Below, in pieces: positions 2,810 through 51,700 of a stretch of 64,000 nucleotides of DNA. Under the pieces are notes generated by a model. It ran no database searches, was not told where the DNA came from, and saw nothing but the letters and a program-made list of their open reading frames with translations. The stretch's first letter is position 1. Each line of letters starts with the position of its first letter. The position numbers and the translations under genes are program-made. The stretch comes from Asterias rubens (Eukaryota): contig NC_047073.1 of assembly GCF_902459465.1 (NCBI RefSeq), positions 4,898,001 to 4,962,000 on the forward strand. Reading direction: 5' to 3'.

Positions 2810-3089
2810 ACACATGTCATGACACGACATAACGTGCGGAAACAAGGGTGGGTTTTCCCGTTATTTTCTCCCGACTCTGATGACCAATTGAGCCTAAATG
2901 TTCACAGGTTTGTTATTTGATATAGAAGTTGTGGTAAACGAAGTGTGGGCCTTGGACATTACTGTTAACCGAAAGTGTATAATGGCTTTAAGCCTAAATT
3001 TTCACAGGTTTGTTATTTTATATAAAGTTGTGATAAACGAAGTGTGGGCCTTGGACAATACTGTTTACCGAAAGTGGCCGATGGCTTTA
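2810..3089 (-). mobile_element. Truncated copy of TTAA-MITE family A with a 100-bp terminal duplication
   Basis: Reverse-complement match to 4176-4352; gcctaaat.ttcacaggtttg restarts at 2892 and 2992. Confidence 0.88.
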
Positions 3090-7045: not shown

Positions 7046-8766
7046 GGGCGATTCCGCGGTAACACGCGTTACGCTTTTGAGGGTCCTTCATCATTCTCCA
7101 TTCTCTGGCTGCAAAACTACTTTGATTTAAGTGTTCATCTTTTGTATTTTAAAACCTGAATATCTAGGCTAGATCCCCATGTCCACACAAAAGTGAAAGA
7201 TCAACTGGTTTAGCTGAGAGAGCTCTGCGAAAATCGGTAACACGCGTTACGCTGAATGGAAAGACCAAAAAAATACCGAACTTCATTTCAACTTTGTCCT
7301 AAAACTAACCAGCCTACAACAAATTTGTTTCTATTGTCATCAAGTACTATGCTAAGGTTTATCATACCAAAATAATTACAATAATCCAAGTGTAACTTAT
7401 TTAGTAAATTTCAAAATAGTCGGTAACACGCGTTACGGTAACACAGGTTACAATTTTTCCAAGCTACATGTTTATATGTTATTTCAATTGTTGAGTTACA
7501 AATTCTCAAAAAATATAAACCAATATCAGTTGCACATTATATTTAAAGAGCAAAAAAAATTAAATAGACCTTTTTCTTAACGTTTTGCTCTACATATCAC
7601 AAAATTTAAGGTAACACGCGTTACGGTAACACGCGTTACAATTTGTCTTGCTACTTTATTGATGTTATTTCAATTGTTGAGTTACAATTTCTCAAATTTA
7701 TCAACCAATATCAGTTGCACATCATATTTGAAGAGCAAAACAGTAGCTATAGACCTTTCTATTCATTTATTTTTTTAGTTGCTCTACATCTCCCAAAATT
7801 TGTAGTGCACGCGATTGTTCACTATCACGGGTTCTCCAGTTTCCTAATAATATGATTCCTAAAATAAAATGTTTTGTCAGCTTTAGGACTTGCCAACTTC
7901 CAATTCCTTCAAGCAGGGGGCATCCCTAAAACACTGAAGTCATTTTCTTCACTTACTTGCATTACATCACCACGGAAATAATCCTAATCATAAAACCACA
8001 AAAAATAACTCCCCACTCTTAGAACTGTTAATTTGACCCCCCCCCCCCCCCCCCCCCATTCCATCGACATGTCCTTTGCCGTGGGATGTTGAAAAGTAAT
8101 TCAACCTCATTCACATTATGCTTGCCTACCAGGCCATGGAACGTGGCAGGAATATTTAAGTTTTTAAACTGTGTGCTGTGCCCATCTGACCCTTGTGTAT
8201 TGGGCTTGGTAACACGCGTTACATTGGTAGCACGCGTTACATGGTAACACGCGTTACAGTTTTCGGAGGCTCATTGTGAAGCGGTGGTTAAGAATTCATC
8301 TAAGTTTTTACATGAGCCCTTATTAGTAGGAGGAAAATTAAAAGTTGCAGCATTTGAAACCAGGTTGTTTAGTAATTATATTTAAAAGTGTGTGTTTTGG
8401 TAACACGCGTTACGCTCTCTGAGAGTACCTTAAACCAAGTGTTGACATAAGTGTACATTAAGTTGTATTGAAATTTTACATATTTTTTCTGAAAGAATAC
8501 TGCCCATACTTGCTCTCATTAATACTTTTTTAAAGAAAATTGATACTGACTATAAAAATAGGTCAAATTGATAAAACCATAAAAAACATTACTTTTTTCC
8601 CCCACCAAAGTGCACTATTGGAAAATTAATTTTTTTCAGTTAACAATATCCGAACAGAATAAAAAAAATTCCCCTGACACTTGGACATGTTTGGAATGAT
8701 ATAAAGATAAATTCTGGGAGCAATTTCATTTATCTAAGAAAATTCCACCTTTTCATGGAATCGCCC
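7046..8766. mobile_element. 1.7-kb non-autonomous DNA transposon, Sola2-like (GGG termini, 4-bp TSD)
   Basis: TIR GGGCGATTCC / GGAATCGCCC with ACAT on both flanks (7042-7045, 8767-8770). About 10 internal GGTAACACGCGTTAC motifs and an internal 188-bp tandem duplication (7422-7609 / 7610-7800). The superfamily is inferred from the termini and TSD only. Confidence 0.7.
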
Positions 8767-22480: not shown

Positions 22481-22579
22481 GAGAGCGAGATTTTAAACTT
22501 ACTGGATTAACTCGTCGAAGCTCTACCAACTTAATTCTATCCAGCTTCTAATGTTAGTTGTCTCTCTATTATGTCAATT
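22481..22579 (-). mobile_element. Degenerate dispersed copy of the tRNA-like repeat
   Basis: gagagcgagattttaaac...gctctaccaact...ctatccagc..taatgttagttgtctctctattatgtcaat aligns by eye to 48853-48955. Confidence 0.6.
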
Positions 22580-48741: not shown

Positions 48742-48779
<38 letters not shown>

Positions 48780-51700
48780 AATAATAAACCACAAGGGAAA
48801 CTGACTGGGAACATTTGTTTTAAATGATTTTGGATTGAACAAAGAAAATTGACTAGAGCGGGATTTGAACCAACGACCTCCGGTTTAACGTGCCGGCGCT
48901 CTACCAACTGAGCTATCTAGCCCTATGTTGGTGGTCTCCCAATTTTGTCAATATCTTTGTTCGGGGGTGCCTGTCAGAAGCCATTAAACCGCAAACTGCC
49001 GTGTAGCCAGGGATCACACCCGGGTAACGATACAACCTGGGAAGCGGCAGACAGGGGATCACCTTAAGGGGATGCGACTTTTTTATATCAGATATCAAAT
49101 AATAAACCACAAGGGAAACTGACTGGGAACATTTGTTTTAAATGATTTTGGATTGAACAAAGAAAATTGACTAGAGCGGGATTTGAACCAACGACCTCCG
49201 GTTTAACGTGCCGGCGCTCTACCAACTGAGCTATCTAGCCCTATGTTGGTGGTCTCCCAATTTTGTCAATATCTTTGTTCGGGGGTGCCTGTCAGAAGCC
49301 ATTAAACCGCAAACTGCCGTGTAGCCAGGGATCACACCCGGGTAACGATACAACCTGGGAAGCGGCAGACAGGGGATCACCTTAAGGGGATGCGACTTTT
49401 TTATATCAGATATCAAATAATAAACCACAAGGGAAACTGACTGGGAACATTTGTTTTAAATGATTTTGGATTGAACAAAGAAAATTGACTAGAGCGGGAA
49501 AATTGACTAGAGCGGGATATATATATATATATTTGTTTTTTAAAAACTTGTGTGAGCAAAGCAATTTCTTCTTTTGGAGATCAATATGTTCAATAAGTTT
49601 TCTTATGTCTTCTTATGTATTAAGAGTGATACCAAAAGTATACCTTCCCTTTAAGGCAAGTCACTTAATAATGTATTGATTCGTTCTTCGGATGGGACGT
49701 ACAGCTTGTGCAACGCACGTAACAAATCCACTTTCAGTAAGAGAAGGGAAATAGCGCTGGTGTTTCTGCCATGGTCGGTTGCAGATTGTCACCTTACAGA
49801 CCATTACTGCTATCTGAAATCAGTTTCATAATTCAGACAGCACTGAATATTTTAAAGGCAAACCTGTCCCTGAAAATAATAAACGGTTTTAAACGACCCT
49901 CAGCTAGGGCAACGCTAAAAATACTTACACAGGATTAGTGTAAAGTATTGATGTTAGGACTGCACACGTCTATTTTTTGGTTTTTTAGTGACGTCACGAA
50001 GTCCGCCTTGGGCGCCGCCATGTTTAACTCATGTTTACATGTCAATGACACGGAATGTAGTTCAGCTCACAATAAACACTTCCGAATTCACGATTACAAT
50101 GCTGTGAGTGTTGTATGTAGTTATAAATAATATAGGAGTAGTTTGCTATACAATTAGCATGGCTAAAATAACATGGTCACCGACAATCTTTGTATTTTGA
50201 GTGGCAAACCATAATACATGAAAAACCAATCCCTAAAATGTTTTAACGGTTTCTTCAGTTCGGGTTAAACTTGGTGAAGTCCGTCTTTAAAATCTACAAG
50301 GAGTTAAGGGACATGGGGTCCAAGGAAAGAGGGCAAGCTGCAGCATTCATGCAGGTCCTTGCTCCGTGGCTGTACCTTTTACCCTTCCACACGGTCATGA
50401 AAAGCCTTTCAGCCATGCGTTATACCTGAGCGTTAAATTGGCTAAACAAATAACTGGGTGTTGGGCCGTACTTTACAATAAAAAAGAAGACTCGACAAAT
50501 ACTCTTCCTAGAAAAAAAGCACAGGTAGAAAACAGGTAAACCAAAAACCCCAGCTGAAAAAAACTTGTTTACAAACCTTCGCCTGTAGACTCCATTCGAG
50601 ACGCTGTGTTGACTGTATCGCCGAAGAGACAATATCTTGGCATCTTGAGGCCGACAACACCCGCTACAACGGAGCCTGTGATTGGTTGAACATGATGTAC
50701 AGAATGATATCACAACTGTGATTTGTTGAGCTTTCAGTGACAATTGGTTGATTGATTGTTTAACTTGATGACAGGGGCTGAGACGTTCATTATACTCACT
50801 GCTTGACTTACATATGACGTGAGTGGTGGTAGGGATGCATGTGATAAGTCAACCTCGTTCCTATGATAGGTAAATACATTCAAACCGGGGACTTATAACA
50901 AAAGAGGCCAATAGGGTCCACGGTTTGGGAAAGGTCCACGGTTGCAAAACGTGTACCAAACAAAGGGAGCTGTTGCAATGAGTATAAACAAAAGAGGGAC
51001 AATAAGGATGTCCAGTGTTGCAGGCGACACTTGTATGTGTGTGTGTTCTCACTGCGCCATTTTCCAACAGCACTTCTTTATGACTAAAGCAAACGATAGC
51101 GTGATTCCCATGTTTAGCGCAATTGATACACATAACACAAGTGTGACACGATATCCCTAGACCTAAGAAGGAAAAACACTCCTCCCTCGTTTATAATTAC
51201 CCGAATGGATGCCGGCTCGTATTCTCAGTTTCATGTCTTGCCTGTGGGGAATTATAAACGTTTCGCAGACTTGTACCAAGTCTATTGCCATACTGGCGAT
51301 CTCTCCAGCGTGTAGTAAACCATTGCGTTTTGGAATGCCAGAGACGACCATATCTGAGGAGACAAAATAGGCGGGAAAAATTGTGTCATCTTATTCAAGA
51401 AGTGTTATGCATACATCGTCATTCGAATCAGAATGTTTAAAGCCACTGGACACCTTTGGTAACTGTCAACAACCAGTATTCTCACTTGGTGTATCCCAAC
51501 ATTAAATGCATACAATAACAACTTTGTGAAAATCTCGACTCAATCGTTCATCGAAGTTGCAAATTTGTGTGCTTTTTAATGCCTATAAAAGGCTTCAGGC
51601 GTGAAGTCTTTTAAATTTTGAGTACGAAAGTACCTCTTTCTCAAAACAACATTACTTCATACTTCAGAGGGAGCCGTTTCTCACAATGTCTTATACTATC

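Follow-up and report, generated by a model that had tools for sequence, protein, structure and literature searches.

A dispersed 318-bp tandem family with a tRNA-like module in Asterias rubens is most likely a ribozyme-free retroposon of the Penelope type

The window analyzed in this study is a 64,000-nucleotide stretch of the Asterias rubens genome (contig 13, NC_047073.1, positions 4898001-4962000). At 48774-49517, it contains a tandem array of a 318-bp unit, which carries a tRNA-like gene and lies between (TA)n runs on both sides. The informative strand is the minus strand. Tandem Repeats Finder returned a period of 318 with 2.3 copies and 99% matches at 48767-49499, a (TA)16.5 run at 48745-48777 to the left of the array, and an 18-nt duplication in 2.1 copies at 49480-49517. 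The unit number (2.3) is that of the assembly, and the overlapping stretches of the units were identical in a unit-by-unit comparison. An earlier note on this DNA had reported about 2.3 apparently identical head-to-tail units within (TA)n, and both its coordinates and its description were right. The open reading frames (ORFs) of the window near the array had no Pfam match.

Unit positions were numbered from the first base of the cloverleaf (position 1 = window 49240), counting down the minus strand. Positions 1-73 form the tRNA-like part, 75-78 are TTTT, and 79-149 make up an AT-rich tail ending in ...TTATTTGATAT. The remainder comprises a TATA-box-like TGATATAAAAAAG (151-163), a GC-rich part (approximately 164-271), and a block abutting the next cloverleaf (272-318). 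Read 5' to 3' in tRNA-sense, the array consists of an 18-bp scar, a unit cut at 60, a full unit, a unit stopping at 149 (window 48774), and (TA)n. In the 5'-truncated unit, the third of the array, just the last 14 nt of the tRNA-like part are left. The window array is a very recent insertion. The features are as follows.

48745-48773, no strand: (TA)n at the constant end of the array, its 3' tail in tRNA-sense orientation (Tandem Repeats Finder)
48774-48922, minus strand: 3'-terminal partial unit (positions 1-149), whose end ...TTATTTGATAT is the constant 3' end of the family
48923-49240, minus strand: complete 318-bp unit (positions 1-318), with 100% identity to units of over 10 loci elsewhere
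49241-49499, minus strand: 5'-truncated first unit in tRNA-sense (positions 60-318), starting within the T arm of the tRNA-like part
49500-49517, minus strand: 18-bp repeat of 49482-49499 at the 5' junction, an insertion scar
49518-49533, no strand: (TA)n at the variable (5') end, left over from the target microsatellite
49168-49240, minus strand: tRNA-like gene, copy 1, with A box 8-19, B box 52-62, 4-bp anticodon stem, 9-nt loop, and C33
48850-48922, minus strand: tRNA-like gene, copy 2
49163-49166 and 48845-48848, minus strand: T4, resembling a terminator of RNA polymerase III (Pol III)
48923-48969 and, as a second copy, 49241-49287, minus strand: conserved block of approximately 45 nt just upstream of the next tRNA-like gene (positions 272-318), AT-rich near -30
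49078-49090 and, as a second copy, 49396-49408, minus strand: TATA-box-like TGATATAAAAAAG (positions 151-163) just beyond the constant 3' end, from reading of the sequence; relatives have AT-rich variants
22481-22579, minus strand: old decayed copy of the tRNA-like part and the upstream block

The decayed copy, which the earlier note had also pointed out, is real. It retains the tRNA-like part and approximately 35 nt upstream of it, with many transitions, and an nhmmer search with the 318-bp unit did not reach an E value of 0.01 there.

On the minus strand, ARAGORN identified 73-nt cloverleaves at two places, 48850-48922 and 49168-49240, and labeled them Asn-GTT. Against the Rfam tRNA family they scored 54.3 bits (E 9e-11; gathering score 29). 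The A and B boxes of a predicted internal Pol III promoter are readable in the cloverleaf sequence, and the discriminator is followed by a single A and then by TTTT. The earlier description of a 73-nt cloverleaf with intact A and B boxes and a T4 run one base past the discriminator is thereby borne out. A tandem cluster of working tRNA-Asn genes would account for the ARAGORN label and for the intact cloverleaf, boxes, and terminator. However, the loop of the anticodon arm has the sequence A32 C33 G U U A A, and C31 does not pair with A39, where a canonical tRNA has U33 and a 5-bp anticodon stem. The loop had been called non-canonical and unlikely to decode, and we agree.

Relatives were gathered by an anticodon-arm motif scan of metagenome contigs, which yielded 21 contigs with copies 75-96% identical (contigs and array loci are designated by L numbers). 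The cloverleaf was kept across 15 aligned sequences. Positions 31/39 were unpaired in 15/15 (C/A, C/T, or T/T), which gives an effective 9-nt loop; the U51/C63 mismatch was conserved, and G2-U71 was constant. Pair 5-68 is A-T in the window family and G-C in eight relatives, the one compensatory change recorded; the earlier note had named a lack of such changes in the cloverleaf as a finding that would speak against its proposal. None of the five family-level differences within the 73 nt breaks a helix (0/5). The T-run after the cloverleaf was T5 in 7/10 relatives covering it. The upstream block of approximately 45 nt, which is also left in the decayed copy, was conserved in the relatives as strongly as the cloverleaf. 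The "anticodon" varies freely in the family, with eight copies reading GCT, and copies at array ends are cut inside the tRNA-like part. Together with C33 and the mismatches present in all relatives, these properties make it almost certain that the array is not a cluster of working tRNA-Asn genes. We regard the tRNA-like part as a conserved, non-decoding gene of predicted Pol III type.

One metagenome copy has a different extent. L092:1049-1130, which is set in unrelated flanks, consists only of an 8-nt leader (CAACATAG) and the 73-nt cloverleaf. It has the look of a primary transcript made by Pol III from the tRNA-like gene and then retro-copied.

The sequence upstream of the cloverleaf had been described as a GC-rich, self-complementary domain. 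The complementary words do occur, but in folding, the GC-rich part (161 nt) does not surpass dinucleotide shuffles (z +1.09 sense, +0.64 antisense), helices are not kept, and there is no covariation; the CCTGTC/GACAGG helix is broken and not compensated in relatives. The self-complementarity thus does not exceed what chance would give. On both strands of the unit, Rfam at the gathering score and at E<=10 returned tRNA only. The hammerhead core CUGANGA...GAAA was absent from 48774-49518. Both searches uphold the earlier statement that the unit has no hammerhead core.

The genome (417.6 Mb, 150 contigs) was searched with one unit, and 179 matches were listed from 4339 first-look candidates. The matches listed fell into 40 or more arrays spread over more than 20 contigs, and many of them were 99-100% identical. 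The first-look candidates comprised thousands of short dispersed copies, with all large contigs represented. The genome search supports a dispersed mobile family that inserts as head-to-tail multimers in (TA)n, as the earlier note had claimed. A set of 21 arrays, 20 taken with their flanks plus the window array, was analyzed with the units mapped in each. These arrays were 1.6-11.7 units long. In 19/21 arrays, the 3' end was fixed at unit position ~149 (...GATAT followed by (TA)n); the exceptions were L033, which is fused to a Penelope tail, and L050, which is 3'-truncated. The start differed from array to array, with positions 1, 4, 24, 59, 60, 66, 68, 140, 141, 199, 201, 204, 223, 256, 260, 262, 265, 266, 274, and 279. 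The same pattern of a constant 3' end and a variable 5' end was seen in the longer list of matches beyond the 21 arrays. A 3' end at 157 was considered and rejected, as its last eight matches come from BLAST extension within the TA flank; the true end is at ~149.

The unit-unit joints inside the arrays were seamless, with no TA tail and no duplication; hence, the multimers did not arise by later crossing-over between monomer insertions. Variants were specific to an array and common to every unit of it, such as C106A, present in 11/11 L037 units, and an additional A at position 92 throughout L038. Unit-private changes were rare within arrays. Tandem repetition and very high identity within arrays would also be expected of a plain satellite or minisatellite that spreads by recombination or by reintegrated extrachromosomal circles, with the tRNA-like part as a passenger, and tandem repeats of this kind readily form circles. 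A satellite, however, predicts an arbitrary phase at both ends. No array with random phase at both ends was seen, one end being fixed in 19/21 arrays and accompanied by a TA tail, and the thousands of short copies are dispersed over all large contigs. We therefore consider a satellite very unlikely.

A run of (TA)>=4 marked the 3' junction of 17/21 arrays and the 5' junction of 13/21, compared with 4/2133 background 30-nt window bins. Five arrays had (TA)>=4 on the 3' side only, so part of the tail comes along with the insertion. Where flanks are not pure TA, non-simple direct repeats border L034 (14 nt), L037 (18 nt), L045 (12 nt), and L087, a relative (7 nt). At the 5' junction of the window array, L042, L048, and L034, a short piece of the element itself is duplicated. 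Inverted tail stubs or head-to-head arrays were found at L036, L064, and L081 and on contigs 12, 6, and 21. A second 3' site near position 100 (...CAAATTA) was used in relatives and in one array of this genome, L064. Both 3' sites are rich in A and U, in keeping with priming from a nicked target that is AT-rich.

The neighborhoods of two arrays deserve mention. A 447-aa open frame at L036:2161-3501 (minus strand), 150 bp from the array, has 11 EGF-like repeats and resembles a host exon of the Notch/Delta/teneurin type. At L040:2975-4501, there is a fragment of a long interspersed nuclear element (LINE) with a zf-RVT match, whose poly(A) end runs into the TA repeat that holds the array insertion.

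The junctions allow the family to be compared with tRNA-derived short interspersed nuclear elements (SINEs). With these it shares the tRNA-derived A and B boxes, the non-autonomous state, the 5' truncation, and the simple-repeat tail. A tRNA-derived SINE mobilized by a LINE, the monomers of which were later expanded by unequal crossing-over or replication slippage, would explain these properties; many metagenome relatives are shorter than one unit, and a LINE reverse transcriptase (RT) fragment adjoins L040. Nevertheless, the tRNA-like part is internal rather than a 5' head and is directly followed by T4 or T5, the joints are seamless, starts occur at any point of the unit, also upstream of the tRNA-like part, and only the 3' end has a fixed phase. 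The LINE next to L040 has poly(A) at its end in place of (TA)n, and the likely partner of the family is a Penelope-like element instead of a LINE. The earlier note had argued that this is not an ordinary tRNA-headed SINE, and the internal position of the tRNA-like part, the T-run directly after it, and the multimeric insertions agree with that. It had also named monomers that start at the tRNA, with target-site duplications and a tail, as a finding that would speak against its proposal; the insertions are multimers and start anywhere in the unit. A SINE origin is, in our judgment, improbable.

The earlier note had suggested a rolling-circle mode of spread, either through DNA (Helitron or Helentron) or through RNA (retrozyme-like), and had pointed out that both outer ends read A|TC. 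Both ends indeed lie within (TA)n, but only one is the constant end; the other is an arbitrary truncation point. If the family were a non-autonomous Helitron or Helentron, rolling-circle replication would begin at the constant end (plus-strand TC...), pass through a circular intermediate, and terminate at random. The constant end does permit the reading A|TC in (TA)n, rolling-circle replication is expected to produce concatemers, and Helitron/Helentron tandem composites likewise form head-to-tail concatemers in AT-rich sites. The genome also contains Helitron_like_N genes (13 matches, ORFs up to 1921 aa). Seven of the 13 are clustered within 1.5 Mb of contig 15 (12.46-14.0 Mb), and none was found within 100 kb of any listed array. 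Fixed ends are required on both sides for this mode, whereas one end is arbitrary here, and neither CTRR nor a sub-terminal 3' hairpin was present in the arrays. Helitrons are not known to generate target-site duplications, whereas direct repeats of 7-18 nt occur at flanks that are not pure TA (TA-rich flanks bar a general test). Moreover, the fusion of L033 to a Penelope tail and its subfamily mosaic, described below, are hallmarks of RT, and Penelope copies have an identical anatomy. The DNA route is thus highly improbable. What stands of the earlier suggestion is the RNA route, which fits an insertion with one constant and one variable end.

A sequence recurring beside the arrays proved to be the last ~253 bp of a Penelope-like element. 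Its treatment as a separate element of 82-253 bp (Element X) was rejected, since it is the 3' end of this element. The Penelope-like element contains RVT_1, a CX2-5CxxC linker ahead of the endonuclease, and a GIY-YIG domain at the C terminus, in ORFs of up to 921 aa, as in L062:1-2371 and L074 (minus strand). The CX2-5CxxC linker has been described for Neptune/Nematis-type elements and has tentatively been tied to microsatellite targeting (PMC8557442). The genome gave 118 GIY-YIG and 126 RT matches, most RT-fragment matches were 99-100% identical, and the element has more than 120 copies. It is Neptune-like and very young. The copies have (TA)n in front, are 5'-truncated at arbitrary points, and end in ...CCCTATTCATT(AT)n (...CATT(AT)n). 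Penelope copies and 318-bp arrays agree in anatomy and in their TA tail.

A Penelope tail or ORF lay within 1.5 kb of 10/21 arrays, whereas ~0.2 would be expected from 1236 tail candidates in 418 Mb. No Penelope copy was present in the 64-kb window. In L033, the last unit belongs to a different subfamily (T5, 3-nt deletion at 104-106) from the upstream units and at position 151 passes, with no TA between, into a 47-nt Penelope tail, which is followed by (TA)n. This mosaic and fusion indicates serial template switching by RT; template jumps therefore do happen. L064 was also considered as a direct template-switch chimera of Penelope element and unit. It was rejected because the (AT)3 at the joint points to a nested insertion.

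The 3' end of the Penelope element has features of its own. The last 253 bp contain two CCAAT-like boxes, a TATAAAT box, and a hammerhead-like core (CTGAAGA...GAAA) approximately 45 nt from the end. Although this core pattern is present once, Rfam scored no hammerhead in the tail, so it is hammerhead-like only. Dozens of the listed copies (1236 first-look candidates), for example, L052, L054, and L055, are limited to the final 82-95 nt of the tail. Most of these start at one point, at or just past the TATA-like box, and they look like retro-copies of a short tail-initiated transcript rather than random truncations. A second Penelope-like family, with ~56% identity over the RT region, has frames of 931 aa that are intact (e.g., contig 6, 19785803-19786405; contig 18, 5135614-5136216), and further, more distant families (~42% identical) are present.

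The arrays were very likely inserted by a retro-mechanism. It is likely that the 318-bp family is a non-autonomous retroposon whose unit, in tRNA-sense, undergoes target-primed reverse transcription of the Penelope type, with a Penelope element as the most likely partner. That the resident young element is the supplier of the enzymes is probable. In the mechanism we propose, an endonuclease would nick a TA-rich target. Synthesis would begin at or next to the AU-rich ...GAUAU (position ~149) that precedes a (UA)n tail, and would proceed in the 5' direction over more than one unit. It would halt at an arbitrary place, frequently with a small jump whose trace would be an inverted stub or a duplication at the junction. 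The very young Neptune-like Penelope element would most likely provide the enzymes in trans. The multimeric template may be a read-through transcript of an existing array ending in its (UA)n tail, a circular monomer copied repeatedly, or monomers linked by serial template jumps.

Tandem units were also found in three independent metagenome contigs, namely L098 (complete 318-bp unit), L081 (316 bp), and L084 (315 bp). The unit sequence was present in contigs of 13 studies, and eight of the runs are recorded as RNA, including seawater and marine metatranscriptomes. Raw RNA-seq reads with another organism label span the entire unit and are deepest over the cloverleaf and the upstream block. Unit-junction-spanning reads numbered 109 and 209 in RNA libraries; such reads fit tandem DNA and circles alike. 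Most RNA reads were 90-95% identical, and 92% and 82% of them continue into unlike sequence. They therefore stem from related families or a related organism. The organism of the reads is probably a relative, with only 0.42-0.58 of the words present. The reads show that the sequence is present in RNA libraries and that the tandem junctions are real. In one rRNA-depleted metatranscriptome, the summed word depth was ~10^6 over the cloverleaf and the upstream block, with 6879 short variant contigs, far above the rest of the unit. This depth may reflect very high expression of tRNA-like RNAs belonging to this superfamily or a pile-up of many families.

Several observations weigh against a Penelope-mobilized retroposon. 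Target-site duplications could not be statistically separated from the TA background (mean longest match 11.8, compared with 10.7 for mismatched controls). A sensitive blastn comparison of a unit dimer with Penelope copies detected no similarity (best E 0.3). The two elements share only the TA tail and a weak likeness of the last ~13 bases; the partner is for this reason proposed from anatomy and co-location, and the co-location could reflect a common preference for TA repeats. Retrozymes resemble the Penelope pseudo-LTR, where LTR denotes long terminal repeat (bioRxiv 10.64898/2026.07.22.740005), and the 318-bp unit does not. The conserved T4 or T5 right after the tRNA-like part should stop Pol III, whereas the template must reach position 149 and beyond, which makes the tRNA promoter an awkward source of the template. 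Finally, the RNA reads carry another organism label, give no strand information, their mate orientations being equal, and have no discrete ends.

Even so, the known systems that come closest are of the Penelope kind. Penelope-like elements make tandem and inverted insertions with a (TA)n bias (PMC8557442). The 318-bp family resembles the endonuclease-bearing members in this bias, in the constant 3' end and variable 5' truncation, in partial tandem or inverted copies, and in junction scars (PMC8557442), all of which the resident Penelope family displays as well, but it is non-coding, has no sequence in common with them, and forms far longer multimers (up to 11.7 units). The animal non-LTR retrozymes are non-coding units of 150-400+ nt, each with a type I hammerhead, for which mobilization by Penelope-like elements has been proposed (PMC7229834; bioRxiv 10.64898/2026.07.22.740005). 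In common with them, the present family has a short non-coding unit and dispersed tandem copies (40 or more arrays, over 20 contigs), and its genome contains Penelope-like elements. Distinct from retrozymes, it has no ribozyme on either strand and carries a tRNA-like gene of Pol III type instead. Helenus and Ajax are non-autonomous LTR elements bearing small-RNA genes (PMC10886601), and Cassandra forms long tandem arrays (PMC7215508). The family shares with these three the status of a non-autonomous retroelement and an intact Pol III small-RNA gene away from the 5' end. However, they have an LTR, a primer-binding site, and a polypurine tract, all of which the 318-bp unit lacks. It differs from Helitron/Helentron composites in having flanking duplications and one arbitrary end and in lacking Helitron termini. 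Literature searches turned up no account of tRNA-bearing tandem elements of the Penelope type. The family is most likely a ribozyme-free, retrozyme-like retroposon of the Penelope type.

Within such a retroposon, the tRNA-like part most likely serves as a promoter for each unit, as a processing signal, or as both; alternatively, it may be a small-RNA gene riding along. The conservation of the T-run argues that the Pol III transcript is mostly a short RNA and not the template. A bolder proposal, which we consider rather unlikely, is that the module replaces the hammerhead of retrozymes. In that case, the host's tRNA enzymes, through Pol III start and stop or through RNase P/Z cutting of longer RNAs, would set unit-length RNAs, which would be circularized or joined by jumps and then copied repeatedly by the Penelope RT. 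If this were true, the family would represent a class of retroposons that derive from circles and are processed as tRNAs, with no ribozyme.

Among the major classes of retrotransposons, the Penelope-like elements are the least understood, and the hammerhead-defined retrozymes are their sole described non-autonomous riders. If our interpretation is true, neither a ribozyme nor Penelope-derived sequence is required for mobilization, and the tRNA-like Pol III gene points to another route to the expression or processing of a rider. Both the 318-bp family and its proposed partner look currently active, because copies are 99-100% identical in both. The pair may provide an experimental system for reverse transcription of the Penelope type, template jumping, and the targeting of TA repeats. 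These elements also seed TA microsatellites and tandem arrays, which bears on the birth of satellites.

The window contains two other tandem duplications, both unrelated to the 318-bp unit. They lie at 2891-3076 (99 bp, 1.9 copies, 93%) and at 7422-7758 (185 bp, 1.8 copies, 83%).

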